64,000 bases of DNA. It comes from Setoptus koraiensis. Taxonomy: Eukaryota; Animalia; Arthropoda. The DNA is taken from contig CM106585.1 of the NCBI GenBank assembly GCA_048013815.1, forward strand, positions 1,178,001 through 1,242,000. The letters are read 5' to 3'. How positions within the stretch are numbered: position 1 is the stretch's first letter; the number at the start of each line of letters is the position of its first letter. A program made the position numbers and the translations under genes. The notes beneath the pieces are model-generated. The model saw only the letters and a list, made by a program, of their open reading frames with translations, was not told the origin of the DNA and searched no databases. Shown piece after piece: positions 6,106 to 63,774 of this stretch.

Positions 6106-8339
6106 GTGGTGCTGGGTGCTATCATTATAACGGTATTACGCTTTCATCTTGATCTGCTGGCCTCTTCTCTTTATATTTCTATTTCTGGCGGCTCCCTTCG
6201 GAGGCTAGTTACGCTGCTGCTGCTACTAGCAGCAAGCATAATGGCAAGCTCCTTCGCAAGCTCACTTGCCTCGGCTGGCCATAAAAACAAATATAAATAT
6301 AAATATAAAATAACAATAAATATAAATATATAAAAAGGCAAACATACGCAGCAAGGGTTGGCATGTGTGCGTGTGTATCGTAATATTATTATTGCGATAG
6401 GCAAACAAGTGGCTCGATTTGGCCAGCGATGACAGCACTGTGAGTGATTGAAAAGCAGCACCAGCAACAACAACAACAACAACAACAATGCAACTACCAA
6501 TTGAACTGCACAGTGGCACAAATCAACTGCTATTCGATTCATTCAATTTGGGGCCCCCAGTTGGTTCAATCCGCTCAATTGATTCGATTCGTTACAACTG
6601 GTGCAATTGATTTGCGCAATTGGCAATTGGCATTAGGCAATTGTTGTTGCTGTTGCACGCAAGATGTTTGGCACAAGAAGTTTGGCACTAGAAGTTTGGC
6701 ACAAGTGGGGCGCCCCCTAGCAAACATAAAGCAGCAAAGCAGCAAATCAGCAAATCGAGCACGCGACTGGCGGTCAGTTGTCGAATTGAATGGTGCGAGC
6801 CAGTGTCAATAATTGTAAAGGCACTTAGGAATAAAAAGAAGCAACGTGTAAATGGTGCCAATGTATCTTTTTATTTTTTATTTAATGTCTAGACGGCGCT
6901 CGTCGGCAGCGGGCCCGTTGCTTATTGTAAGAGGCTTTTTTGTGAGCTATCTATGCCACTCTCGGTGCGCTACCAAGATTGCTCGTGGCACCGGGCTTGC
7001 ACCTGATTTTGTTGCCGTGTTGTCTTTTCAGTGTTGCGTCTGTCGCTTAACGCCAATCACAGTTTGGCCTGGCAGTTGGTGAGGCCTCTGTTGTGTTCGG
7101 ATCAAAAGTATAAGTAATCCGGCCCGCGCGAGTAACGGATAGCCTGGCAAATTGGCCCAACAAGCAGTCAATCTCTTGCCAGTCTCGTGTCCAAGCTACA
7201 CAGTGTGGCCTGTAGGTGGCCAATGATGTTACTTAAATTGCACTCACCGCTCAACCTTTTACACGCCCGTCTGGCTGGTCACACAAACACAAAAAAAAAG
7301 GGGACCAGGCAAGCGACTGACAGGGGCAATATTTCAGGCGCACAAGCTTACTATCTGGCCATTGCCAGCCACCAATTGGCAAACGACTCGCTGGCCGGCT
7401 GGCTGGCCGGCTGGCTGGTGGGCGAGAACGGGGGCCCGAGAAGATTGCGGAAAAGATAAAATGATGATATTAGTTTAAAGAGACACACAGCGAGAGACGT
7501 TTGAGCGCGCTTAATGCGTCTTGGCTGGCGACAAGTTGGCCCCCAATTGCAATTGCACCGGCACACCCGAATGAAACGGAAACCAAGTGGCCAGCGGACA
7601 ATCAATTGGCGCCCGTGGCCGTTGTTTGCAGTTTCTAAAGGAGGGCGCCTTTGTACGCGTGATCAATGTCATTTTGTTCTCGTTCTTTCTGCACCATTCC
7701 GGCCATTCGTTGCCAATGGGCCGAAGCACTCGGCGGCCCAATCGCTATTGATGGGGCACAATTATGTTTTGAACAGCAGCGAGGGCCGTTGCAGGCGCAC
7801 TGACAACGACCAAGCGACTGAGAGTCTGGGCGAAAGTTGACAAAAACAGTTTGCTATTATTTATCTCGCTTGCGCTCTCGTCAATGTCGCCAGCATCGCT
7901 CGCTCGGGGGCCCCGAGCGAGCGGTCGCATGTTTGTCGGGCCCCACAGCAGTGCAACAATGCAAGCCGCCAACGAGTGGCGCCGCTCACGAGCAGTGATA
8001 AAATAATTTCAAAAATAATACTAATGTCTCTGCGAAATAGATCCAATGAAGTGTCTGCTGGCTAACCGCTGCTCACGGTTACACACGCCAGCCCGTGCCC
8101 ATACAACCATAGATATATATGGCGGATATATGAGGCGGCGGCGGCGGCGGGGGGCAGAGGGGGGGCGCCCAAGCGAAATAAATATACACTGTGCGGAGGC
8201 GCACACAATGCATTGTCAGCAGGCAGATATATTATCGAGTTGAGTGGCTACGCGCTGGCCCCTCGGCCCCCGCGAGTTATTATATAATCTGATAGTTGGT
8301 ATTTGCAGGGATTTACACACAGCACACTGAGTTACTCAC

Positions 8340-8772
8340 CTTCTTTGCGGCTTTTCATTGCCAGACGGCGCTCTGGCCTGTCGTTCAGTGTCAATTTGTC
8401 GCGCTGGCCCCTGGCGCATAAATCAGGCCCCACTGTGCAGTCTTGCTGTGGCCCTGATGTTGCACTTGGCCGTGTGTCGCGCTCGCTGTGCCCGTTACTT
8501 GAACTACTCAGGCGCTGCGACAATGCTCTTGAATTGCCAATCGATGGTGCGCCAGCAGCGATCGTATCGTGAAAAGCGGCGGTGTCACGTTGCAAATTGT
8601 TGCCACCATTATTTGGTTGCTGGTAATTCAATTGCGGGCGCCCCACTGGATGTTGCTGTCGTTGGCCGACTCGCCTAGGTGATGGCTGGTCCATTGTTGA
8701 TTTTATCAGCCTCAACAACAACAACAAATTGTCTGGCGAGTGGGCGCCGCTGCTGCCGTTGTAGTTGTTGTC

Positions 8773-8803
<31 letters not shown>

Positions 8804-11800
8804 TTGTTGTTGTTGGCGTTGGCGTTGGCGTTGGCGTTGCTTGCTTGTTGTTGGCGTCGCTGCCTCTCAGTGTCATCGTTGTACGTCAATTTTGTCATGT
8901 ACGTCGCTGGCTCGTATTGATCATCGACGATCAGCTGCTCTTTGTTGTCATTAGCGGTCATTGTTGTGTGCGTGGCGGCCACATTGTGCGCTGTCGTGGG
9001 CCCCCCCAACTGAGCCGATTTTGTTGGCCCCTCATTGGGGCTGTCGCTGCTTGTGTCGTTGGCCACGTCAGCGCCATTAACGCTGCCCGTGCTGTCGCCA
9101 GCGTGTCGGCCCCACGCACCTGATGCGGCGGCCGCCAACTGGAGCCTGTTTTGCTCCCCCGCTTCCGGTTTCAGCTGAATGACGCGTGCGTAATGCGACC
9201 AAACAAACTCGGCCCCGTCTGACCGACGCTCGCCGCCGCCGCCGCCCAAATAATCGCTGTCTAAATAATAATTGTCAACTGGTCGTTGCTTGTTGTTGGC
9301 ACTAACCACAAAATGCTCCTCAGCGTCATCCCAAACTGAGCTCACCTGTCCGCCGATGCTGGCATGTGCCACGTCTACCGGGCTGCCATGTGAGCGTCCT
9401 ATAGTGGCGCCATCTGCTTCCACTTGGCGCTTCAAGCGACTGGGCGCCAGTGGCATGCCATTAGTGGGTTGCCTCAGCTCGCTGGTGCTCATAATCACGC
9501 CATGCGGCCGCTGATCACGGGCAGCGATAAAACTACTGTCATAATTGAGTTTCGCTTGAGAAGATAATTGCTTAGCTGATGACCGCTCATTTCTGGCTAT
9601 TGTGGGCCCCGTCATGGGCAAACTGTGGGCCCGTGGTTGTTGCTTGTGGGCCCGTCGCGAGCTCGCTTGGACGCCCACACCAAAACGCCGTTTATCGATC
9701 ATCATCATGTGTGAATGGCGGACAGGAATGGGCATGTGGCCGCCGTTGAGTGGCCCATTCACAACACCAGTGATGTCGCTAATTTTAAATAAGCCATTAT
9801 CGTATGTCATCGTAAGCGTGTCAGCACCGTCGCCAGACTGTTGGTTAATGTCTGGCATTAGCCGCCTCGTCGTTTTAGTAACATTGTCGCTAGTTAGTGA
9901 ACGCCACTTATTTGCGACCCCGTGGGCGCTCAGTGAGGGGGCGCCATCAGCCATGAGTAGTATGCCGTGCACTTGTGCAAGTGTTTGAGCAACAGGAAGT
10001 TGTCGCTGCAATTGAGTTGCAGCGGCAAGCGGAAGTGTCAGTGGCCAGCACCAATTGGTGAGTGCTGAGTGTAGTAGGGCCGCCAAGGTGCTCGCTTGTG
10101 TCGACAGCCAAACAGTGCCGAGAGAAATAGTGCCGAGAGAAACAGTGCAAGAAGTGCCCAACGATTGCTGCTCATAATCACGCTGCGAATCTAGTGCTGG
10201 AAATGAGTGATAGGGGGTGCGATGTCGCTGCAATTGTTTCTTTGTTTCAAGCTCATTGTTGTCTTGCCCGAAAACGGCCGACAACAACAACGGGACGATT
10301 CTTTTCTCCTTCTCGGTTGCTGTTGTTGTTGCTGCTGCTGCTGGTGTCGTCGTTGCTGTCGTTGCTGTTGTTGTTGTTGTTGCTGTTGGTGCACCGACGA
10401 GCGATTGTCTTTGTTGGCGACGCGATAGTGGCGACACGGCCTGCCACGACGAGCGCCACGCAAAACAGTTGAGCTGGCCCCTGCAATTGGGCCCGTCACC
10501 AGCGATGCGCGTCGGGTTTCCCGTTTGGCGGTGTGCGGTTCCAGTGGCGACGCCATGACTTTTGTCGTGCAGCCAGAGTGACGCCACTGGATCAATGCAG
10601 CAATGAAGCATGAAAAAACGCGCATTCTCTTCTCTGGCACAAGCACATGGGCCCATTTCAACTGTCTCGCCGCTAGAGGCGGAAACGGCAATTGCAATAG
10701 GAATAAGACGTCGTTGATTGCTGCTGTCCGTGGTTGCTGTTGTCACAAGTGTCGCTAGTGGCGCCACGCTGCTGGCGAGATGACATTGGATAACCTTGCC
10801 GCTGCACGAGCTGCCGGGCGGCCCAAAAGTGGGGCCCAGCTGTGACACAGTGCCAGTTGTTTGGGGTCGCTTGCTCGGTGGTGCTGCTGCTAGCGCTGAT
10901 GATGACGATGCCAATGGCGATGCTGATAACAACGGTGAGAATGATGACAGTGGCGCCCTTTTTGTCGTTGTGACAAACGCTAGAAACATTCCAGCAGATT
11001 GGTGGTGCACTGTCATGACTATAGTGGCGCCGGCATTAGTCGCGAAAGTCGCTATAGTGCGCCGCTGTGCGGCCACGCTAACTGCAGCCGCGGCAGCGGC
11101 GCCAGCAGCAGCACTAGCAGTGACAGTGGTTGCTGTGAGGCCGCTTTCGCGACTACTGCTGGCGGTGGCGACGGCGCTAGTTGGGGCCCACAATGGGCGA
11201 CAACAACTAGCTAAGCGGCAAAATAACAATGATCGATCATCAGCGGGCCAAATGTCATTGTTTTGTTTTCTTTCTGCTTCTGCTGGCCCCAACGTTGGCC
11301 CCTTTATTTTCATGCCTAACCTCGTGTGTGTGTGCGCCGTCATTGGCGACGCTGGGCGACTAGTGGAAATCATTGGAACCGTTGGTAGCATCATTGGTAT
11401 CACTGGTAACTGGCTTGATGGCGGTATGTGTGACACTGGTGGCGTGCTTGCGATAGTTGAGATGGCCGACGGTGTCGCGAGCGGAACAGTTGTCATCGTT
11501 GGCGGTTGTATCATGGTCATCATCAATTGCGTCTCGATAGGCCCGCTGCGTGTATGGTGGACGGCGGCGCCCCACTGCCAGTGGCTCATGTGAGCTGTTT
11601 TGTTGTCAATCATTGCCAATGATTGACCCACTACCGGTACTATCACGAGCGATGGTGGGCCGCTGCTTGGCTGGCTCGCTGGGGCCAGTAACTCCGGGTG
11701 CACGCCATTTAAAACACCCAAACCTAGAGCATAATTCAATCCGTTATTGTTGAGCGTTGCAACTGCCGGCAACTTGCGGCAGGCCGAATTGCAACAGTGG

Positions 11801-14301
11801 CACTCGAAGGCGAGGGCGTCATCGTCGAGACGCCGACCGGGCCCGCTTGAGCGCCCGATATTGAGTTTGCAGTTGTCGCCGTTGTCGCCGTTGTTGCCGC
11901 TGCCGGCGATCAACAAGCTCGCCGGCGCGCTCCTTGCCGGTTGTTTGTCGCAAAGTGAGGCCAACAGCTCGCTCATTTGTACTGGCTTGCATAGATCGCT
12001 GCTGGCCGTGGTTGGGCCATCGATATTGGACAACAATGGACGACAATGTTCGGGGCCCTGGTAATGAGAAGCATGATTGTAATTGTAATTACTACTGCCA
12101 GTGCTGCCGCCCGAGCTCGATAATAATAACAGAGGCACTGCTGGCGCGCTGCTTGCTTGGCCCAAATTTGAGATTGCAACAGCAACAACGACAACCAACA
12201 GCGAGCAGCATTTGCATCCACTAAGCTGGCTTTTGGCGCCGCCGCCATTGATATTAATCATCACATCATTGTAATTAGTTTCACTTTGTTGTACACAGGC
12301 CATTCGCAACTCAACATTCCTCCGCTTCTTCTCCTTCTTCGCTTGTGTTCCATCTAATAATAATTTCATCTTATTATACATGCACTGCGAGCGGCTCTGC
12401 TCGTGTCCGTGTGGCCGCTGCGGGCCCCACCAGATCGCGTGGCCGTCGGAATTGCCGCTGTTGCTTATTATTGGCCTCACTGGCCTGGCTGCCAGTGGGC
12501 CCGCGCTGCCAGACGCAATTGATATAAGCCAGCGCTTTGGGGCCTCGCTGTTGAGCATGAGTCGCTGTTTGAGATTGGTGTCGCTGCTGGCGATGCACTC
12601 AATTTTGCTCTCGGTGTGCTCGTGATTCGTGAGCCCCGAACTGCAGCCGCTACCCGCTGCTACCCGTGACAAAGGCGATTGGCCGCTCACAGCAACGTGA
12701 CGGGACTGGCGGGCGCGCGGATTTAGCTTGGCGGGCGCAGTAGCGGGCCCGACGGGGTTAAGCTGTTTGTCAGCGGGCCCAAAGATAATAGTGTCATAGA
12801 TGAGTGATTGAGCATTCAATTCTGTATGTAAATGTATGCAGCGGCAACAGTGGCGGTTGCCGCCGCCGCCGCTGCGGTCTTGGCGCGGCGCCGGCACGCT
12901 TGCCGCTACCGGCTGGCCATGTTGTGCACTTGTCCGCCGGTCACTTATAGGATGGCAGCGGTGCCGGTTCGATTCGCTTGGGCCCGCGATCGGCGGCCGT
13001 CGGTCAGTGGGGCCGCTTCGATGTAAACGATGTAAACAATGTAAACTATGTGAGCGATATAAACGATATGAATGTAAATGATGGCACTTGTTTCCATTGG
13101 CGCGCCAGCCATGACAGTTGGCCCCGTTGTCTCTAGTTGCGTCACTCGATTCGGTTGTTGTGGGGCCCATCGGTGGCCGATATGATACAAGTGAACAATC
13201 GGTGCAGCCGGCTGCACGGTGGCGCATTAAATTGGCAACTTCTTGTGTTTCTTTTTCATACTTCATCCCGTTATCATGGCCAACAACAATGGCACCGACA
13301 CCGTGCTCATATTCACTTAGGCCATTTTTACTTTTGGCGCCATTAAATGGGGCCCCTGAGAAGCACAAGAAAGAAATATTATCCTTATTATTGTTATTGC
13401 TTTTATCTATTATATAACAATAACAGTAATAATAATAATAATAGTTATAGCAATAATAATGATGATAATAATACTTTTGGGCCAGCCAATGCGGGGCCAG
13501 GCTGGCAAGGTTGAAGTGGTGTTGATGTTGGCAATTTAAACAAGCGACACAAGAGCGCATCAAATGCCAATAGCGGCCAACAGCGCCAACAAGGATATCG
13601 TTGCCGCTAAACGGATTTGGCGCCAAAAGTAAATATATTACACTTGAATAATTCATGGCCATTATCGCATTAGTTTTGCAATCGTTATACGGCCAACCAG
13701 CAGTGGCAATGGTCAAGTTGTTGTTAGCTAACTTGACGACCTCTGGCTCGGCGCAATTTGGCAATGCAGTTTTGCGGTACAAGCTTGCACAACAACAGTA
13801 CAAGTGGCACAATATATATCTAGACGATATATAGATGATGATGGCATCATTAGGGCAAACGAGGGGCGCCCTCTCTTGGCGAGACACCAAAAGCGTGTTA
13901 TTAAAATTATAATGCTCTATGGCTAATGGCCTCCGTGGGGCAAGTGGCCATGATTGTTTGTTTAGCGATTGTTTTTTCAATTTTGGCCACTCCGACATAA
14001 ATGATGATGATGATGATGAAAATGTCGATGATGGCTGCAACCGATTGGCAAGACAACCATAAACAAACAGTTGAAAATCACAGTTATAAACTATTATCAA
14101 TAGTGCTGCTGGTTCATTTAATTCGGCCGCTGAAGCTGCATATAGCCAGTCTAGACAATCGTTTTCTCTAGACAATTTCCTTCTGAGGTTTCGCTGATGC
14201 TGTTGTTTTCCCAATGAACAACTCGAACAGGCACCAACAGCGACAACATCATCGATTAGATTGCACCAACGAGACCGGCTGTCGGCTGTTGAATTCAGCA
14301 T
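8340..14301 (-). CDS. Very large coding exon of a low-complexity protein with no recognised domain (possibly secreted or membrane-bound); gene continues downstream
   Basis: 2043-codon open frame (8332..14463) with first ATG at 14301. It ends in a canonical donor, GAA G|GTGAGT (intron starts at 8339, phase 1). It contains Q/N/A/T runs, a hydrophobic segment LLVVVVAVAISNLGQASS (about 12.2 kb) and a dibasic RLKR site (about 9.43 kb). The 5' boundary is uncertain. Confidence 0.7.
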
Positions 14302-16401
14302 TGAATCATTTGTTGTTGTTGTTGTTGTTGTTTGTGGGTCCTCACAGTAATACAATCGGTGAGCGGTGGCGCTGGTGCTGGTGAAAATTGTCCAATAATC
14401 GTTATGATCTTTGCGCGTCTTTCTGTGTCCGTCTGTGGGTCTGGTTATCCTGATGATGAACAAATATCACGGTTAAGGTCACGCGATAGTGAACATTATC
14501 GTTATTTTGACCGGATCGGATATTGTTACCCACATACAGTATGTTGGCACACATATGAGGGCAGTTGTTAAGAGAGTAGATATAAGTAAAGTTAGAGATT
14601 ATGATATTATCGAGACATTGCGCAATATATGTGATATATGATTAGATTTATTAGGCGGTGAGGTGACGAGGCGCCGGCAAAATGATGATATTTCACTCAT
14701 GATATCGCACGAGAAAGCTGTTGCGGTCACGGCCATGATACCATTATTATTATTAAGATTGGCCCCTGAATGTGAGCACAATAGATGAAATGGCTTCGTT
14801 TTTTGCTCGCTAAGCTAGCTGGATAAATGACGAGCTGCAGTTGCAGCGGGTTTCAGTTCGTTTGGGCCGCTTCAGGCAAGTTTTAAAAATTAATACACAC
14901 GCCAATGCTCGTCCCAGGGGTTAGCAGCGTGTCCGCCGCTATAAAATTGGTGTGTTGCAGAGCGGTTTTCTGTGAAAATTCTCTCTACATCTAACCACAT
15001 CAAGATCATTATTAAATCAAAGCGCCATCATCACACAGTTTGAGCAAATGATTTAATGTGCTGGCCCAGCTCAATGTTCAACTAGTACAAATAGAAATAT
15101 CACTTATCTCCCCCAAACTTCTATTGGGCGACAGTAATGATACGTGCTCCTCGAATTGCAATGGTTTGTTTTCAGCGAGGCACACACGCGATTCGGGCAC
15201 CGATGAGTTCCGTTTAGCCAAGCATCTTGGTGATCGCATGATCTGGCCATGAAACATGAAACACGAATTTGAAAGGGTAAATCTCACAGGGATCAGTGAT
15301 GAACAACAGCTTTGGCTGCTATTTTTTTCTGCTGTCGATGTCGGATTTCTGGCAATTTGTTGTGGCAAAACAGAATGAATTATCGACTCTTTCTGACACG
15401 ATGCGCCACAAATCCGGTGAAAAGAATTTATCTGTTTGCGCCATTCTATCATCAGTGCACACTAACAGGATATCAGACGGACGATGGAGCAATTTAGATT
15501 GAGTGATTGCTTATGGCTTTGATGTGGCTGCTTTGATTTGGGTCCGTACAGTCATAGCGTATAGTTGGTATAGCGGCAGTTATACCATATATCACAGTTG
15601 ATAAAAGCGTTGATCTAGCAGACGGATAACGGTTGTGAGTTGTTTTGTGAAAAGTGGCCAGCAGCAGCCGAAACAGTTTGCTGGTTGGCTACAATTGCAT
15701 TAACAAGACGATCACGACCAAACTAGAGTATGGCGAGAAATCAATAGAGCACTTATTTCTCCCATAGACATACGGACGACATTCGGACAGAATAGTGGAG
15801 TCGCGACTTCAGACATTCAATTTGGCCCCTAAGCCAGGGGGCGCCGCTAAGCTAGTTGCGGTTAGACACACTTGGGCGCTGTCGGTGGGTATTGTATTAC
15901 ATAGTGCATCTATCTATTCTGGTAAATCTGTTGTTGCAGTTGATGTCATCATATAACGTGCACATATGTTATGCTGGCTGTATAGCCGTCATCACTTATA
16001 CAGCGGCCAGTTTATCAGTTGTATGGCCAGCCGATAACGGTTGCCTGCTGACCGTCATTGGCTGGCCATACACACATACACACACCAAATAGAGATAGTG
16101 TTTCCTGTTATGTAATTATTACTGTGCCATTCACAACACTGCACAATCACAACACTGCACAATCACAACAGTGTATACATATTAAAAGCACTTACACCTA
16201 CTCGTACACGGGCCAACAATTGCAATTGTGTGTTTATCATTGCTCGAATGTCGCCCACTGTCTCTCATTACCATGCTAATAATACAACTAACTGTTAGTA
16301 ATTCGCCAACCGATCATCAGCTGTCTATTATCATATGCTGAATAATTCCACCAATCAGCTGTAATATCACGGTAGTTGGTGGCACATCGATGACATCGCG
16401 A

Positions 16402-53468: not shown

Positions 53469-53702
53469 GTGTCAAGGGGTTGTCTCATTTCGGGGTATTT
53501 TTATTTTTGGTCTTCGATTCTTGAAAATAGGGTATGGTTGGAAAGATCTCTCTCCGGTGGAGCCAGAAATCTGGTTTATTTCTGTTTCTGGTTTTTCGAG
53601 AAATCTCGACCTGTTACACTGGACGAGCTGTTGTCAATGGATGAAAATATCTCAGTTTGTGTAGGCTCATTGGTCAGGGATATAATAAATTTAATAGAAT
53701 AA
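53469..53702 (+). pseudogene. 3'-terminal remnant of an F-box/LRR-UPF1-like helicase paralogue (cassette unit 1)
   Basis: 53597-53695 aligns closely with 61013-61110 (EKSRPVTLDELLSMDENISVCVGSLVRDIIN vs EKSRPVTLDDLLSENENILVCVGLLVRDLIN), in the same position relative to the ankyrin gene. Confidence 0.8.
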
Positions 53703-53743: not shown

Positions 53744-54607
53744 CTACGATGGAACATGGTGTCCTTCAGATTCGAACAATGTTCTCATAAAGTCACTCTC
53801 TTCATCACGATGCGATAATCTCGAGAACTCAATAGAACGGTGAGGTTTTCTACCCGCCCTATCCCTTATATGTGGGTCGGCACCACATTGCAGCAGTAGC
53901 TTCACCGCATCATAGCTTTCATGGAGGCAAGCTTGATGCAACACAGTATAACCCCTAGAATTATCATTGTTATCTATATAGTCAATCATTCCCTGTCTTC
54001 CTTCCTTCTCCTCCACATGCCTAAGTAGTAGCTCGAGACATCTCATGCCTTCTCTTTCATAGGCAGTGTAAAGTCCAAGATGAACAGGTAAAAACCCATA
54101 ATTCGTTCCGAGGATGTCCGAGGAAGTCTTCTTATAGTCTGCGCCAATCTCTAACAAAAACTTAATGCTTTCATAACGTGCCTTGTTCATGGCATGTGCC
54201 AAGGGAGTCATGCCCTTATGATCGTTTTGGTTTATGTCGAAACCCTTAGACATAACAAAACTAATCATTCCAGGGCTATTAGATTCTATAGCTAGATTCA
54301 GAGGTGCTCTACCGCTTTCTGTAAGATCAGCCCCATTTTGAATGAGAATTTCTGCAATCTCAACAGATCCACCCCTGATTGCTTTTTCTAGCGAACGAAC
54401 ATTAACATTAGCCCCTTTTGATATCAAATAGATGACAGTGTCAACTTGACCACCGAGTGAAGCGCCGTCCAGTGCTGTGTCGCCATGATAATCGGTATAA
54501 TCCACATCAATATTTTCTTCTTCAAGGTAGAACTTAACCTTCTCCATTCGGCCAGCCATCGCTTCTTGTACAAGTTGATCTCCATTTTTGTCGTTGGTTT
54601 GTTTCAT
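53744..54607 (-). CDS. Ankyrin-repeat protein (287 aa, about 7 repeats), paralogue 1, intronless
   Basis: Intact ATG-to-stop ORF with G-x-T-[AP]-L...L-L-x-x-G-A-D/N repeats (GDTALDGA...LISKGANVN; GMTPLAHA...LLEIGADY; GYTVLHQAC...LLQCGADPHIRD). Confidence 0.92.
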   Translation of the reverse strand: MKQTNDKNGDQLVQEAMAGRMEKVKFYLEEENIDVDYTDYHGDTALDGASLGGQVDTVIYLISKGANVNVRSLEKAIRGGSVEIAEILIQNGADLTESGRAPLNLAIESNSPGMISFVMSKGFDINQNDHKGMTPLAHAMNKARYESIKFLLEIGADYKKTSSDILGTNYGFLPVHLGLYTAYEREGMRCLELLLRHVEEKEGRQGMIDYIDNNDNSRGYTVLHQACLHESYDAVKLLLQCGADPHIRDRAGRKPHRSIEFSRLSHRDEESDFMRTLFESEGHHVPS

Positions 54608-54846
54608 AGCGTTGTTATCTCCAATTATTATTCGTCATGGAGAGGTTGATATTCCTGGATGAATATGTACCTTTGTATCACTCTACCTGTGCTGGTAGGT
54701 GCAAGATAGCTCACAATAATGACACGGATTTCAAAGGAAATATTTACAATGACTATGATAATACTGAATGTGAGCCAAGTTGAAAGTTACTATGGTCTCC
54801 GCTACTTTTGATATAATGCAACGTTATGAGTGAGATGATTGACAAA

Positions 54847-54943
54847 GGTATACTCGATAACAATCTCATTAGTCGGGTGTTACAAATGCTAGCACACGCT
54901 GTTGTTTCAATGTAAGTCAATTTGACACAAGAATGGCCCCCAT
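54847..54943. repeat. Duplicated segment 5' of ankyrin paralogue 1 (partner at 57780-57898)
   Basis: ggtatactcgataacaatct...cacgctgttgtttcaatgt...gaatggc(cg)ccccat is shared at equivalent positions upstream of ankyrin genes 1 and 2. Confidence 0.85.
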
Positions 54944-55261: not shown

Positions 55262-55326
55262 GTAGAGGACTGTTGTACTCTGAATTCAGAAAAATCTCGA
55301 CTTATTACACTGGACGAGCTGTTGTC
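55262..55326 (+). pseudogene. Second 3'-tail remnant of the helicase gene (cassette unit 2)
   Basis: gtagaggactgttgtactctgaatt-cagaaaaatctcgacttattacactggacgagctgttgtc matches 60981-61050 with a small deletion; it is truncated next to the MULE remnant. Confidence 0.85.
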
Positions 55327-55447
55327 AAAGTTCCAGCCAAGAAAGGCCGGCAAACATCATTCAGCAGGCTGTTGGAGAGATGCCAATCGATGCTGCCTTT
55401 GATTTGCCTACTAGAATGGCTACCCGGAAAACAATCTATCGTCAAAG

Positions 55448-56538: not shown

Positions 56539-57414
56539 TCACGAAAATCTGGCTCGGTCGGCGAATAATTTTCCGAACAATTTCTGTATATGCTTGCGAT
56601 TGTCTATACGTGTTTCATTAATATGACACCAACTTACGATGCAATGGTAAGCTTTGCGACCCTTCTTATCTCTTATATTTGGGTCAGCGCCACATTCTAG
56701 CAACAGCTTGACCACATCATAGCATCCGATTGCACAGGCAGTATGCAAAGCAGTAGTCCCCCAATGATTGTCATTGTTATTTATATAGTCAATCATTCCT
56801 CGTCTTCCTTCCTTTGCCTCCACATGCTTTAGTAGTAGCTCTAGACATCTCAAGCTTTCTCTTCCTAAGTAATAACGAGGGTGATTAAAAGGTAAAAACC
56901 CATAATGCCTGCGCTATATGTCCGAGGAAGTCTTCTAATAGTCGGTGCCGTTCTCTAGCAAAAACTTAACGCTCTCATAACATCTAAACATCATGGCATG
57001 TGACAGAGGTGTTTCACCAAGATCGTTGTATTGGTCAATGTCCAAACCAACAGACATGACAAAACTAATCATTTCAGGGTCATTAGAGTATGTAGCTAGA
57101 TTCAGGAGATTGACACGTCTTACTTCTTTACAATCTGTTTTAGCTCCTTTTTGGATGAGGATTTTTGCAATCTCCACATGTCCTTTTTCAACCGCTCTTG
57201 CTAGCGGACAAAAATCAATATTAGCTCCCTTTGATATCAAGTAGTTAACAATATCAACATGTCCGCGAGAAGAAGCAATGGACAGTGCTGTGAGGCTACC
57301 ATCCTCAACATAATTCACATCAATGCTTGCTTCTTCAATATAAAACTTAACCTTTCTTAGTGGGCCACGAACTGCAGCCGACAATAGCTGACTGCGTAAC
57401 TCACCACTGGACAT
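56539..57414 (-). pseudogene. Ankyrin-repeat paralogue 2 (291 codons) with two in-frame TAG stops
   Basis: ORFs 56935..57414 and 56539..56853 share a frame. The bridge reads GTDY*KTSSDI*RRHYGFLPF...SLRCLELL, with TAG at 56935-37 and 56914-16, collinear with paralogues 1 and 3. Confidence 0.88.
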
Positions 57415-57779
57415 CGTGAGCTTGTATCACTTCATCTATGCTTGTACCGGAATTTACAGCTGAACATCCAAGTCCAGACATCTGCCGCAAAATTGCTTCT
57501 GTGCTCCCCCAAATCTTATATCTAATGTATATATTGATGTAATATTTAGTGGTTATAGTAGATTCGACGAATTATATAACAGGCACTGGCTAGTGTAATG
57601 GTGCCAGATATTGTCTTCTGATGATAGCTATACGGGATAACACAATAATAATTCAGATGCCAATAAGAATATTTATTTTCGCTAAATGATAGCGAAAATA
57701 AAAGTAGGAATTGTCTCCGTTATCGTTGTTATTGTACCCTATTGTTTGGTGTTACATGTATGAGTTAATGCCTGACCAA

Positions 57780-57898
57780 GGTATACTCGATAACAATCTT
57801 ATCAGTCCGGTGTGTTTTGAAGGCTAGAACACGCTGTTGTTTCAATGTCGACAGGAGAATGACGTCAACCATTTCGACACTAGAATGGCCGCCCCCAT
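57780..57898. repeat. Duplicated segment 5' of ankyrin paralogue 2 (partner at 54847-54943)
   Basis: Direct nucleotide similarity to 54847-54943. Confidence 0.85.
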
Positions 57899-58346
57899 TA
57901 GTGTTGGGACAAATTGCATATTGCACAGCTATTTCCGCAGATTTCCAAATCCGCAAAAATTTTTGCGCACATTTGCGTCCTGACAGTTTCGATGTCAACT
58001 GCCATTATGGATTTTGCCAATGAGACACCGAAAGACTCACGCGTAGCTAATACTGTTGTCAACAGTCATTCTTACAGCTGTTTTTCATCGGATACAGTCT
58101 ATTCATAGACTGTATCCTGTTCGAGCTTTAGTATATGGAACTTTACCCACATAATGACGGCACAAACAAAATCTGATAAAATCCAAATCATCCTCATCAG
58201 TATTCTATCGCAGAACGATTGTTATTTTCAGTATTTGCATTGTTGCTCACAACAACACAATTTTGCCATAGCTTCAATACTCAAATTTTGTATGAATCAT
58301 TGTTGACCTTCTTCCTCTGGCTCACAAATACTTGTCAGCAAACACT

Positions 58347-60209
58347 ATGGCGTTAGAGGAACCGACGTGCTGGCTTGACCTGTTGCCCGTCGAAGTTTTG
58401 CTCATAATACTCGACCATCTTAGAGATCACAACGATCGCTACCATTTGTGCCTGCTGTCGGACCGACTAGCGAGTGTGGTATTGGTATCATATCAATTAC
58501 ATCGGACAATTGAGAGTTTATCACTCGATTATTGCATGGCAAACTCTATCTCCCTTGAAACGCTGGAGCCAATCCTTACTAGTGCCTTAAAACTCAAGTC
58601 ACTCAAATTTACGAATAACAGAAGTGAGAATGCGCTCAGAGGGATAGGGCCCGACGCTCATTTCATAATAACTGACAATTGTCCACAATTGGAAAGCTTG
58701 GACGTGTCTGGAGTGTCAATAGCTCCGTCTGAGCTCACATCAATATTGGAAAAATGTGATAGAATGACAACTTTAATAATTACCAGTAATCGATTAGATG
58801 ATGACAAGGAGCTGGAGATCATCAAGAGTCGCTGGCCTAATTTATCAATTTTTGATAGGAGATACACTATTGATCCCAAGAGTCGCTGGCCAAATTTATT
58901 AATTCTCGATAATTACTCCTTTAAAAGACTTGATACTCCTTATCGTGCATCTCGAATAGGTGGAAAACTTTCGATTCTCAGTTTGACGGCGAGCGGAGAT
59001 TTATTCAGGAAAGAAGAAACTCTATTGGTTAATGAGATCCCGTTTAATGCTCACTCGTCAGAAGAAGACCTCAGATACTCCGAGCAAGATTTCACAGAAA
59101 TACAATGGAGTCGGCACTGCACTGGTGATGAATACTGGATTGCGAAAATAGAATTAGATGCATTCGATCGATCGTTTCTTCGAAATATCGACTTCCATAC
59201 CAATCTGGAGCTGTCTGAATTTAATGCACTCGGTGTGAGGATATGGTCAGCAAGAGGATGGCTTCATCATGTTAATATCATCTCTTCCCCTAACCGCCAT
59301 CTGCTTGTTGCACCTCGTCGCTCCGGCTCTCTTTCTGGGGGGTATATCAATTTCACACTGACTCATTTCTTTAGTCTTGATAAGAACTGGTGGTATTTTG
59401 ATGTATGCAAATATTTGCCAACTAAAGGCTTGTTCAGATTGATTAATCTCACGCTTATAGAAAAGCACAGAAAGAAGAGGACATTCATTGGGCTCCAACG
59501 AATCTTATCTGACAACTTGCTTCGTTCTGTCTTTCTTCCCCAAAGAAATGTACATGTAAACTGGTCAAGAAAAAATCTATTGAAATCTGTAACAATAGAC
59601 ATGAAGACCTTAGCTGATGATTTCAATCGGCTTGATGAATGTCAAATGGATGCAATCAAAAATTCATTGTCTAATAGAATCAGTTTGATCATGGGACCAA
59701 CGGGCACGGGAAAGACAGTGACTGCTACCTTATTGGCCTTGAAACTATTCCAGACGAGATTCTCTAGCAGATCCAAGATACTTTTTTGTGCTGCAGACAA
59801 CAAGACCATCGATAATATAGCAGAAAAGATTCACGAATCTGGCGAACTCAGAGTTGTTAGAATTGGTCCTGAGTATTTCATGAAAGAACAGGATGCAAAA
59901 TATAAGCCATATTACTTGAACAGGCTCTTGCACGAAAGAGGCCTTGATTCAATAGATCCTTTCGATATAAATGAACTAACGTTATTACTGTGGAGTTACT
60001 GTGATCCAGGAAGTTTAAGTCTTGAAAGTGACGAGAGAAAAAAAAATCGGAATGAGAGGAGTCGTTGCAAGCGAGAAATTCTTGACAAATCAGATGTTAT
60101 TTGTTGTACTTGCGAAGACATTCTTTCATTGTCAATATACAGTATGCCTTGTCTTATCGATTCTATAATTGTTGATGACTGCAGCCAAGTCAGAGTTCCA
60201 GACGGCTGA
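58347..60209 (+). CDS. F-box + LRR + UPF1-like SF1 RNA helicase fusion, 5' part (F-box, LRRs, 1B-like region, RecA1 to motif II)
   Basis: First ATG at 58347. F-box LDLLPVEVLLIILDHL. FBXL-type LRRs (NCPQLESLDVSG; EKCDRMTTLII). Q motif LDECQ. Walker A GPTGTGKTVT. ILFCAADNKTIDNIAEKIH (UPF1 VLVCAPSNIAVDQLTEKIH). DVICCTC. Motif II VDDCSQ. No introns. Confidence 0.88.
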   Translation: MALEEPTCWLDLLPVEVLLIILDHLRDHNDRYHLCLLSDRLASVVLVSYQLHRTIESLSLDYCMANSISLETLEPILTSALKLKSLKFTNNRSENALRGIGPDAHFIITDNCPQLESLDVSGVSIAPSELTSILEKCDRMTTLIITSNRLDDDKELEIIKSRWPNLSIFDRRYTIDPKSRWPNLLILDNYSFKRLDTPYRASRIGGKLSILSLTASGDLFRKEETLLVNEIPFNAHSSEEDLRYSEQDFTEIQWSRHCTGDEYWIAKIELDAFDRSFLRNIDFHTNLELSEFNALGVRIWSARGWLHHVNIISSPNRHLLVAPRRSGSLSGGYINFTLTHFFSLDKNWWYFDVCKYLPTKGLFRLINLTLIEKHRKKRTFIGLQRILSDNLLRSVFLPQRNVHVNWSRKNLLKSVTIDMKTLADDFNRLDECQMDAIKNSLSNRISLIMGPTGTGKTVTATLLALKLFQTRFSSRSKILFCAADNKTIDNIAEKIHESGELRVVRIGPEYFMKEQDAKYKPYYLNRLLHERGLDSIDPFDINELTLLLWSYCDPGSLSLESDERKKNRNERSRCKREILDKSDVICCTCEDILSLSIYSMPCLIDSIIVDDCSQVRVPDG

Positions 60210-61117
60210 ACCTGCTGCGATATCGGCCCAGAAGGTTTGTACTTGTAGGCGACGATAATCAATTCCAACCATTCATGAAGGAATGTTTATATAACAAACT
60301 CAAAGGTATCGGTTTCGAATCGATCTCGCTGAATGTTCAGTACCGCATGCACCCGGAGATAGCGAAATTTCCCAACGAACACTTCAATGGAGGAAAGATT
60401 AGGAATGGTATTCAAGCGAGCGATAGAAAGTGGATAGGTAACCAGGATATGTGCCCGTTCCCCAATCCCGACAGGCCCATCTATTTTCATTGCCACACTT
60501 CAGATGAGAGCTCGAGATCCCAATCGACATCGTGGATCAACGAGGGCGAAGTCGAAATCGTTATTGCCACGATTGATATTCTGCTTTCGCGGGGTCTTCA
60601 TAAGAACGACATTGGAGTGATAACACCTTACAAAGATCAGAGTAATCTTATCAGAGACCGATTAAAGCCCAGACCAAACCACCAACCAGCCGACGAAACG
60701 GACCATGCAGATTACATACACCTCCGATATATTTTGGGACAATATTATGATGGAGATGTTTGTGTCGAAGTAGATACAGTTGATACCACATACCAAGGTC
60801 GTGAAAAAAACTACATTATTGTTTCATTGGTTAGATCAAGAGACTGTTGTGGTTGTATTTTCGATTGGAGGATGTTGAATATAGCGCTTACTCGAGCTAA
60901 ATACGGTCTCATCATAATTGGAAACGGATTGGCTTTAGTGAACAATCCATTGCTTAATTTATTGCTTAAGGATTGTTCTGGTAGAGGACTGTTGTACTCT
61001 GAATTGTTGTCAGAGAAATCTCGACCTGTTACACTGGACGACCTGTTGTCGGAGAACGAAAATATCTTAGTTTGTGTAGGTTTATTGGTCAGGGATTTGA
61101 TAAATAAATTGACTTAG
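60203..61117 (+). CDS. UPF1-like helicase fusion, 3' part (motifs III-VI), in the -1 frame relative to the 5' part
   Basis: The frame of ORF 60275..61117 is open upstream as LNLLRYRPRRFVLVGDDNQFQP (motif III), then QYRMHPEI (IV), IGVITPY, YQGREKNYIIVSLVRS (V) and LNIALTRAKYG (VI). PFPNPDRPIYF and STSWINEGE match UPF1 WPQPDKPMFF and GTSYLNRTE. Confidence 0.88.
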   Translation, partial: RLNLLRYRPRRFVLVGDDNQFQPFMKECLYNKLKGIGFESISLNVQYRMHPEIAKFPNEHFNGGKIRNGIQASDRKWIGNQDMCPFPNPDRPIYFHCHTSDESSRSQSTSWINEGEVEIVIATIDILLSRGLHKNDIGVITPYKDQSNLIRDRLKPRPNHQPADETDHADYIHLRYILGQYYDGDVCVEVDTVDTTYQGREKNYIIVSLVRSRDCCGCIFDWRMLNIALTRAKYGLIIIGNGLALVNNPLLNLLLKDCSGRGLLYSELLSEKSRPVTLDDLLSENENILVCVGLLVRDLINKLT

Positions 61118-61162
61118 ATTGATGTGCCTCATATTAACTATACGGCTATGAGGCACCCACAA

Positions 61163-62050
61163 TCAACTATAGTATTCATCTGCTTCAAACAATATCCTTA
61201 TATAGTCGACTTCTCTTTCTTCTTCGACATTTTCGTCAGAACAAGTAAATCTTGACCACCGAATATGATCGAAAGGTTTTCTACCTTCATTATCTCTAAT
61301 AGTTGGGTCCGCGCCACAATCTAGCAACAGCCTGACCATATCATACCTTTCTGAGTGGCAAGCTACATGCAAAGCAGTAACGCCGTCAGAATTATCATTG
61401 TTATTTATATAGTCGATCAATCCTCGTCTTCGTTCCTTTTCCTCCACATGCTTGAGTAGTAGCTCTAAACATCTTATGCTCTCTCTCACAATAAAAGGTT
61501 CACCCTGGTAGTGGACAGGTAAGAAGCCATAACCTCCCTTCCCAAATTCGCTAGCAGAAGTCTTCTTATAATCTGCGTTGTTCTCTAGCAAAAACCTAGC
61601 GCTTTCATAACTCGCTGTCGAAATGGCAAATGCCAGGGGTGTTATACCCTGGTCGTTGTACTCGTTAATGTCAAAAAAACCTTGAGACATAACATAGCTG
61701 ATCATTTCAGGATGATTGGACCTTACAGCCCAATGTAGAAGATGACTACCGCTTTCTGTAGGATCAGCCCCGTTTCGAATGAGGATTGTTGCAATCTCAA
61801 CAGATCCGGCCTCAACAGCATCTATTAATGATCTAACATTAACACTAGCTCCCTTTGATATCAAGTAATTGACAGTGTCAACCTGCCTGGACCCAGAAGC
61901 GAGGGACAGTGCTGTATCGCCATGTTTATCGGTATAATCCACATCAATATTTTCCTCTTCAAGGTAGAACTTAATCTTCTCTATTCGCCCCAATCTGGCA
62001 TCGCTTAAAAGTTCCCATTTTCGTCCATTTTCGTTGTTGCTATGTTCCAT
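61163..62050 (-). CDS. Ankyrin-repeat protein (295 aa, about 7 repeats), paralogue 3, intronless
   Basis: Intact ORF collinear with paralogue 1 (GDTALSLA; GITPLAFA; GVTALHVAC...LLDCGADPTIRD). Confidence 0.92.
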   Translation of the reverse strand: MEHSNNENGRKWELLSDARLGRIEKIKFYLEEENIDVDYTDKHGDTALSLASGSRQVDTVNYLISKGASVNVRSLIDAVEAGSVEIATILIRNGADPTESGSHLLHWAVRSNHPEMISYVMSQGFFDINEYNDQGITPLAFAISTASYESARFLLENNADYKKTSASEFGKGGYGFLPVHYQGEPFIVRESIRCLELLLKHVEEKERRRGLIDYINNNDNSDGVTALHVACHSERYDMVRLLLDCGADPTIRDNEGRKPFDHIRWSRFTCSDENVEEEREVDYIRILFEADEYYS

Positions 62051-62366: not shown

Positions 62367-62703
62367 CTAAAATATACTATGACAAGATTAAGATGGCTTG
62401 CAAGTTGCAACTTGCAGATCATATGGTTCACAATAATAAATCGGTCGCAAATAGTTTTTCATCTGACAGCGCTCACTGTGCGGACATTGTGTCGCCTTGT
62501 GTTCGGTTGTCCTCGGCAAGAAAGTCGAAATCCGCCGCACGGAAAATACACTGTGGAAGTTAGCGTAGCTTTTCTAGTTAAAAAAAATTGTTATTGCGAC
62601 TACCCTCCACAATAACTTGTAATAATAATAATACATGTATATCAGAGAGCTATCAATAATTATTTATCACTTGAACCGTTGTTGGACCGTAACAGTTAGC
62701 TTT

Positions 62704-63774
62704 ATGATGTATTCAGGAGGAGGTAGCAGCAGATTTAACAATTTTCAAAATCATAACCGTACTCATGGAACCCAAGAACCAGATTCTTCAATGAATAGAA
62801 ACTGTACCGACCTGGTTCTTCTAGATAGAACAAGCTCAACTATACCCCCAATTGGTAATTCCGTCCTTGATTCAACAGAAAACTCAATATTCACTGCCAA
62901 CCTTAGTGATGTCGCTATAATGAGCCAAGTTCTCAAAGAGATCAATCATGTCAACGACAAGTCTGTCTTTGTGATAAACAAGCAAGGAGTTAGGATAGTT
63001 ACGTCGGGTGAACCTTCGTTCCAAGTGTCCGTGCTGTTTGAGAAAGAAATGTTTGAAACTTATGTATATAATTCAAATCAGGACACAGAATTTGGATTTC
63101 TATTGAAACACTATATCCAGTGTCTTAATTTACTCTGTGATGATTTGGCCAACGACGATGATAGTCAAGTACATACCAATAACACTTCACGGTTTCCAAC
63201 ATCTTTGTATATGCAGTATAGAAGTAGGGGGGACCAAAAGAAGCTCAAGTTGGAGTTGGGATCGTACACGGCAAGAATTGATTTGAAATCTTTTGAAGCC
63301 GAAGTTCTGCCTCTAGGATACGGAGAAGGTGATGATGGAAACATTGGAAGCATCACCTTTAATTCAAGTAAATTCTACGAATTGATAAGTAGTCTGGATT
63401 TTTCCAGCAACTTCATAGAGATATCTTTGGAGAATTCGGGTACCCCTTTGAAATTGACAACAAATTCAGAGTTAGGTCAAGTTGAAGTAGTAGTCGTTGA
63501 CAGCCCACAGGAAAACATCATCATTGGTGGAACCAACAAATGTCCCTTATCTTCCACGTTCAATTTTAGATATAGAACAAGTTTTATGAAACCTGCTATA
63601 CAAGCATTAACAACTTCGTCAAGAGTAACTCTCAAATGCGATAGTTACGGACTACTATGCCTAGAGCACATAAAGAGTTACAACACTGCAACGTCATCAC
63701 AAGAAAACGTTCAGAGGAAATGCTCCGTAGAATATTATATGATGTCTGAAGCAAGTGAGGCAGAACTATACTGA
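62704..63774 (+). CDS. RAD1: Cell-cycle checkpoint clamp subunit RAD1 (9-1-1 complex), intronless
   Basis: FTANLSDVAIMSQVLKEI...INKQGVRI...FQVSVLFEKEMF; YIQCLNLL; FRYRTSFMKPAIQALTTSSRVTLKCDSYGLLCLEH; CSVEYY match Rad1-family motifs (LKPSTKALVLSCKVSIRTDNRGFLSLQ; CFVEYY). Likely start is the ATG at 62704 or 62707 within ORF 62635..63774. Confidence 0.88.
   Translation: MMYSGGGSSRFNNFQNHNRTHGTQEPDSSMNRNCTDLVLLDRTSSTIPPIGNSVLDSTENSIFTANLSDVAIMSQVLKEINHVNDKSVFVINKQGVRIVTSGEPSFQVSVLFEKEMFETYVYNSNQDTEFGFLLKHYIQCLNLLCDDLANDDDSQVHTNNTSRFPTSLYMQYRSRGDQKKLKLELGSYTARIDLKSFEAEVLPLGYGEGDDGNIGSITFNSSKFYELISSLDFSSNFIEISLENSGTPLKLTTNSELGQVEVVVVDSPQENIIIGGTNKCPLSSTFNFRYRTSFMKPAIQALTTSSRVTLKCDSYGLLCLEHIKSYNTATSSQENVQRKCSVEYYMMSEASEAELY

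Follow-up and report, generated by a model that had tools for sequence, protein, structure and literature searches.

Near one end of a 64,000-nucleotide stretch of the genome of the arthropod Setoptus koraiensis (assembly GCA_048013815.1, contig CM106585.1, positions 1,178,001 to 1,242,000 of the forward strand; this whole stretch is called the window here, and positions are counted from its first letter) lies an intronless gene, at 58347-61117 on the + strand, which joins a predicted F-box and a short series of leucine-rich repeats (LRRs) to a helicase module that probably derives from a UPF1-like enzyme. It is distributed over two open reading frames (ORFs). ORF A is open from 58332, has its first ATG at 58347 and is closed by the TGA at 60207-60209, giving 620 codons (58347-60206) that cover the F-box, the LRRs, a middle region and the first RecA domain (RecA1) up to motif II. 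A second + strand ORF at 60275-61117 belongs to a frame that is open already from 60179 and stops at 61115-61117; read from 60209, this ORF B supplies 302 codons and a stop, with motifs III to VI followed by a tail of 60 residues. Frame A ends in IIVDDCSQVRVPDG, which is motif II, while frame B goes on directly with LNLLRYRPRRFVLVGDDNQFQPF, which is motif III, and the spacing of the two motifs across the break fits a Upf1-like helicase. ORF A and ORF B together make up one gene, which the absence of a single letter at 60204-60206 has divided: within 60204-60209 the TGA closes the first frame and the second takes over, at a place where other copies or alleles have one letter more. With 922 codons in all, the gene agrees with the original prediction, made from the letters of this DNA, of one intronless unit of about 923 amino acids once a single frameshift is repaired. 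The 2.77 kb of the gene hold no other in-frame stop and one lesion in all, and the start of ORF A matches the starts of its relatives (alignment A1). Two other explanations of the break were rejected. A tiny intron does not fit because frames A and B overlap by only about 30 bases, as expected for the loss of one letter; programmed frameshifting lacks a slippery site, and natural copies have the additional letter.

These copies come from four public sequencing runs (X1, X2, X5 and X7), the contigs of which were aligned on window positions 57900-61400. Every covering contig of X2, X5 and X7 has one extra letter at 60204/60205. In X1, possibly the sample behind the assembly, it is present in one contig (depth 9.6 of 36.4). 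The X5 contig spanning 60024-60229 carries the extra letter and otherwise differs from the window at 2 of 206 letters; the X2 contig that carries this letter is covered to a depth of 96, equal to that of the X2 contigs matching 58425-59720 without any difference (91-110). The copies of X2, X5 and X7 and a minority of those of X1 read through, so that the break is confined to a part of the copies: the broken form is one version among several, with read-through forms at, or very near, the window locus. Many related contigs are found in the reads, at 85-99% identity and with LRR parts of varying length, hence close paralogues or divergent alleles of the gene. Of the 35 listed differences between copies (a subset, the best supported), 18 affect the third position of a codon (p = 0.02) and 16 are synonymous, an excess that points modestly to constraint. 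A 54-nucleotide tandem duplication (KSRWPNLSIFD / KSRWPNLLILD; 58823-58911, + strand, repeat family D10) is found where the LRR part ends, within the last LRR. The structural differences of the public contigs, skips and replacements alike, extend across 58835-59009, around this duplication, which suggests variation of the repeat number among copies.

The F-box occupies residues 9-55 (58371-58511, + strand), with LLPVEVLLIIL at 58380-58412. In the window copy it stays below the cut-off of the Pfam F-box-like family, whereas the aligned N-termini of three relatives, described below, exceed the curated threshold (P0001 with 27.7, P0002 with 32.6 and P0004 with 26.3 bits; profiles PF00646 / PF12937) and that of a fourth, P0003, falls just under it. 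Leucine 13, proline 14 and the hydrophobic core positions of the F-box are invariant in the family alignment. Four to five LRRs follow immediately (residues 56-172, 58512-58862, + strand), as in the FBXL subfamily. About 20 significant LRR matches cover this region, LRR_6-type proteins among them, and the best Pfam LRR match of the window protein is of the NXF1 type. An AlphaFold model of residues 1-250, built on eight sequences and of medium confidence, has a predicted local distance difference test (pLDDT) score of about 70-88 over residues 4-172. Three helices (15-23, 28-37 and 39-51, pLDDT about 70) stand at the position of the F-box, and residues 56-172 form alternating strands and helices (pLDDT 70-88). 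Compared with the PDB by Foldseek, the model finds its best TM (template modelling) score with SKP2 in the SKP1-SKP2 complex (1fs2_A), and the 14 matches with E < 1e-3 include TIR1, FBXL2-SKP1, FBXL17, Dia2, COI1 and MAX2. In Swiss-Prot, F-box proteins account for 23 of the 30 best fold matches, and the alignments of FBXL15, FBXL2, FBXL20 and SKP2A begin at residues 1-2 or 7 of the query; ANP32A and NXF1 are also found among the fold matches. An F-box with FBXL-type LRRs at the N-terminus is thus supported by the model and by the relatives, at the level of family and fold. For the claims made at the outset, this means that the LRRs were correctly recognized, and that the F-box is supported by its relatives and the fold model but not by the score of the window copy itself. 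The structure prediction that had been proposed as a check yielded a medium-confidence model, and one that resembles F-box/LRR adaptors solved with SKP1.

In the helicase module, Pfam AAA_11 matches the end of the ORF A piece (5.6e-23, 82.5 bits for a cut-off of 27) and AAA_12 the ORF B piece (2.3e-47, 161.5 bits for a cut-off of 27); the UvrD-helicase model reaches only E = 0.028 on the window protein. RecA1, with a 1C-like insertion, spans 59613-60206 (+ strand; Pfam, UPF1 match). It contains Walker A (GPTGTGKT, 59694-59717), motif Ia (59781-59813) and motif II (IIVDDCSQ, 60165-60188). Motif III (GDDNQ, 60239-60271), motif IV (QYRMHP, 60338-60361), motif V (TPY...QGREK, 60611-60640 and 60779-60814) and motif VI (ALTRAK, 60878-60925) follow, all on the + strand. 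The statement that all motifs of a superfamily 1B (SF1B) helicase were present holds for Walker A and for motifs III, IV, V and VI, and fails for motifs Ia and II, which are altered. In enzymes of superfamilies 1 and 2, the glutamate of motif II is the catalytic base; without it, ATP should be bound here but hydrolysed slowly or not at all.

Affinity to UPF1 was ranked by scores against solved structures, each half of the helicase being taken separately, which is a ranking and not a tree. Human UPF1 is first for both halves (1.3e-16 for the first, 2e-34 for the second), followed by yeast Nam7 (1.3e-13 and 1.6e-29). Sen1 gives 6e-4 and 1.7e-21, SMUBP2 6e-5 and 1.6e-8, and ZNFX1 1.4e-3 and 1.2e-4; DNA2 (1.5e-18) and Aquarius (6.4e-9) are listed for the second half only. 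With a family profile, UPF1 is matched at 3e-23 over a segment that starts shortly ahead of the Q motif, takes in 1A and the 1C insertion and reaches across motif III. Of the solved structures, UPF1/Nam7 comes closest in both RecA halves, with the 1C insertion and motifs III to VI covered as well, and this score ranking supports derivation from a UPF1-like SF1B helicase, closest to UPF1 as had been proposed. However, the window protein differs from UPF1 in having an F-box/LRR N-terminus and D-D in motif II, and its scores are far under those expected of an orthologue. Its translation contains neither a CH zinc domain nor an SQ-rich tail, the 60 terminal residues being free of any SQ motif; both absences had been noted in the original prediction. 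Because it lacks the two, this is not the canonical UPF1, in which the first reading was right.

It has no sequence support for the region between the LRRs and RecA1, where a segment had been said to resemble the 1B domain of UPF1. This middle region (residues 236-422, 59052-59612, + strand) stands at the position of the stalk and 1B barrel of Upf1-like helicases. It is collinear among family members, with an identity of only about 20%, and has a family consensus (PGD-I-L ... GIVLSK ... YDES-Y-V) reminiscent of stalk/1B barrels. Neither the profile of the whole family, in which the 1C region does align with UPF1, nor a profile of the region alone gives a UPF1 match there, and against the PDB the latter yields chance matches only. 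A model of the whole 620 residues has a mean pLDDT of 45.6 and was not used for a fold search; at this low confidence, it places a beta-rich core between helices. A 1B domain is therefore plausible by position, with no sequence signal in profile searches.

The fusion is also seen in relatives. A HMMER search with window residues 1-420 against 1.84 billion representative proteins returned 26 matches, only four of which are fused (P0001 to P0004, 670-723 residues). These are 34-41% identical to the window protein over residues 9-158 and collinear with it over their whole length, and all come from one unannotated Logan assembly, SRR33593474, on separate contigs where their neighbours are ordinary eukaryotic genes (septin, Rer1, alpha/beta hydrolase). 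The fusion of F-box and LRRs with a UPF1-type helicase is real and recurs in at least four other genes on independent contigs. Three of the four pass the AAA_11 cut-off (P0001, P0003 and P0004; P0002 is under it). All four have a destroyed Walker A and a degenerate motif II; the proteins end shortly after motif III, and no remnant of a second RecA domain was found downstream of them. With neither Walker A nor any of the second RecA domain left, they suggest that what has been conserved in the helicase-derived part would be binding and not unwinding. The original idea of an independent fusion of a helicase with an E3 ligase keeps its first half, an F-box/LRR module and a helicase in one ORF, while the helicase is not fully canonical and its relatives are catalytically dead half-helicases. 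The window gene alone among the members seen retains the two RecA domains together with an intact Walker A, and it therefore looks like the least degenerate, ancestral-type member. There is also a stand-alone F-box/LRR homologue of the N-terminal module (P0007, 298 residues; L004, 1354-2250, + strand), as expected for a fusion. Its contig is compact and intron-poor, with housekeeping genes (ThrRS, Yju2 and a WD40 protein) as neighbours. The other matches checked with Pfam are ordinary LRR proteins matching residues ~57-180. No relatives were found by scanning 2.9 million viral contigs, or metagenome contigs, with the family alignment, and a search of a protein atlas gave generic AAA_11 clusters only, at low scores. 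A word-indexed protein search with ORF A, the helicase part and the family alignment returned no match, UPF1 included, which makes it unfit as a search for architecture. The family looks confined to one lineage.

Full-text searches of 8.4 million papers and preprints produced no description of an F-box joined to a UPF1-like helicase. The original prediction knew of no described family with this architecture, and the combination of F-box/LRR with a UPF1-type helicase is apparently undescribed. Two systems come nearest in concept, and neither is related in architecture. FBH1/FBXO18, a precedent omitted from the original prediction, has an N-terminal F-box and a superfamily 1 (SF1) helicase in one polypeptide, making a ubiquitin ligase of the SKP1-CUL1-F-box (SCF) type that is positioned by its own helicase (bioRxiv 10.1101/2025.09.30.679681). 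Its motor, however, is a UvrD-type SF1A DNA helicase and it is devoid of LRRs, whereas the window protein has a Upf1-like SF1B module and LRRs after the F-box. ZNFX1, rightly invoked at the outset as coupling RNA binding to ubiquitin-ligase activity, is a Upf1-like SF1 RNA helicase with E3 activity in the same protein (bioRxiv 10.1101/2025.10.14.682297, PMC13710534). By contrast with the window protein, it has no F-box, its ligase activity resides in its own zinc-finger region, and the sequence match given above is weak; the Pfam scan of the window protein detected no zinc-finger family, the NFX1-type fingers of ZNFX1 included. The FBXL proteins (SKP2, FBXL2, FBXL15, FBXL20) are the best fold matches and share the order of an F-box followed directly by cysteine-containing LRRs. 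In these, the substrate receptor consists entirely of the LRR solenoid, whereas here some four to five repeats lead into a helicase of 700 residues.

How should this gene be understood? We lean, if modestly, towards a genuine, lineage-restricted family in which an F-box and a short FBXL-type LRR solenoid have been fused, in one exon, to a module derived from a UPF1-like helicase, and which would act as an RNA-linked SCF adaptor. The F-box would dock on SKP1 and recruit CUL1-RBX1, while the LRRs and the helicase-derived module together would form the target-recognition end, bringing ubiquitination to a protein sitting on RNA, or recognized together with it. With Walker A kept and the catalytic glutamate lost, an RNA clamp or switch that binds ATP and hydrolyses it slowly appears more likely than a processive unwinder; the dead half-helicases of the relatives argue against unwinding as the conserved activity of the family. 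To be sure, several facts weigh on the other side. The F-box of the window copy scores 17.4 bits for a cut-off of 24.3, the structure models rest on 5 to 8 sequences only, and docking on SKP1 is a prediction. Against the D-E and APSN of UPF1, motif II reads D-D, without the catalytic glutamate, and motif Ia reads AADN. The reference copy is frameshifted, with a stop created at 60207; the runs returned by the query for RNA carry contigs of 25-56 kb, and are hence DNA-like; and the family is seen in only one other run, maybe from the same or a sister species. Lineage-specific F-box fusions, besides, are common, which limits the reach of the claim.

Some of these facts could be taken together as marks of decay, making of the gene a dead duplicate in a segmentally duplicated region, with the frameshift and the D-D of motif II as successive steps and no functional protein as the outcome. 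Truncated relics of the helicase and a truncated ankyrin paralogue nearby, as well as the degenerate state of the other known members, go in the same direction. Yet there is a single lesion in 2.77 kb, near-identical contigs in other runs have an intact frame, and the differences between copies show the synonymous and third-position excess mentioned above; moreover, D-D or an equivalent loss of the glutamate is common to the family, and therefore old and tolerated rather than recent. We regard a pseudogene as unlikely, while taking it seriously. It is more improbable still that the protein is a diverged UPF1-like helicase with an LRR domain serving mere interaction with protein or RNA, its F-box-like helices no longer binding SKP1 and no ligase being formed. 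The sub-threshold F-box of the window copy and of P0003, the NXF1-type LRR match, and ANP32A and NXF1 among the fold matches would be accounted for in this way, but not the three relatives exceeding the curated thresholds at the aligned position, nor the invariant leucine-proline pair and hydrophobic core, nor the predominance of F-box/LRR adaptors in the Swiss-Prot fold search, several of them aligned from residue 1. Finally, large DNA viruses commonly carry ankyrin and F-box genes; the gene is intronless, the reads contain many contigs 85-99% identical, and one could imagine a helicase gene multiplied by a transposon or by a virus that had integrated. This we hold to be highly improbable: no terminal, inverted or transposon-like repeats were found bounding the helicase gene, the 2.9 million viral contigs contain no relative, the known relatives sit among ordinary eukaryotic genes (septin, Rer1, ThrRS), and the neighbouring Rad1 gene is intronless as well.

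A genuine family of RNA-linked SCF adaptors would lend itself to a bolder reading, which we offer tentatively and judge doubtful as a whole. It would be a new class of SCF adaptor with a UPF1-derived helicase as its target end, the full-length, ATP-binding form clamping RNA and directing the ubiquitination of proteins found on it, and the many dead half-helicase paralogues acting as diversified binders or decoys in a conflict between host and parasite, or in RNA surveillance: an F-box counterpart of ZNFX1, of independent origin. With its rapid turnover, its tandem copies and its degenerate paralogues, the family resembles F-box families driven by conflict. Links between helicases and ubiquitin ligases (FBH1, ZNFX1, the CH domain of UPF1, Rad5/HLTF) tie the recognition of nucleic acids to the fate of proteins. 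An F-box with a UPF1-type motor, if confirmed, would be a further independent case of such joining, and would open a practicable route to the question of how a motor bound to RNA aims an SCF ligase. The window copy would record how the dead half-helicase F-box genes arose, and questions of ATP and RNA binding are best put to it.

The surroundings of the gene are repetitive in their own way. A convergent ankyrin-repeat gene (61163-62050, - strand) lies 45 bases past the helicase stop, and two paralogues of it are found, on the - strand too, at 53744-54607 and, truncated, at 56935-57414 (the middle one of the three). The three are about 71-75% identical at the DNA level, and conserved sequence is present upstream of ankyrin paralogues at 54825-54913 and 57759-57848. 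Adjoining the paralogue at 53744-54607 is a relic of the 3' end of the helicase gene, ~100 bases long (53591-53690, + strand), and a second 3' relic occurs at 55262-55328. No more than the terminal 40-100 bases of the helicase gene are contained in these stubs beside the ankyrin paralogues. A tandem array of whole helicase and ankyrin units was rejected, since what is repeated of the helicase is limited to its final ~100 bases. A scan of the window with Rfam gave no match. Downstream of the helicase gene is the intronless gene of the Rad1 checkpoint clamp (62635-63774, + strand; Pfam Rad1 5e-24), in which about 85 additional residues precede the Rad1 domain at the N-terminus. Intronless genes are packed in the interval 53-64 kb; by contrast, positions 1-53000 have very few long ORFs, and none of the ten tested has a Pfam match. 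At 8332-14463 (- strand), in the part of the window richest in G+C (0.54-0.56), there is an open frame of 2043 codons, without a Pfam match, where runs of A, S, T, N and Q give the appearance of a large disordered protein or of one giant exon.

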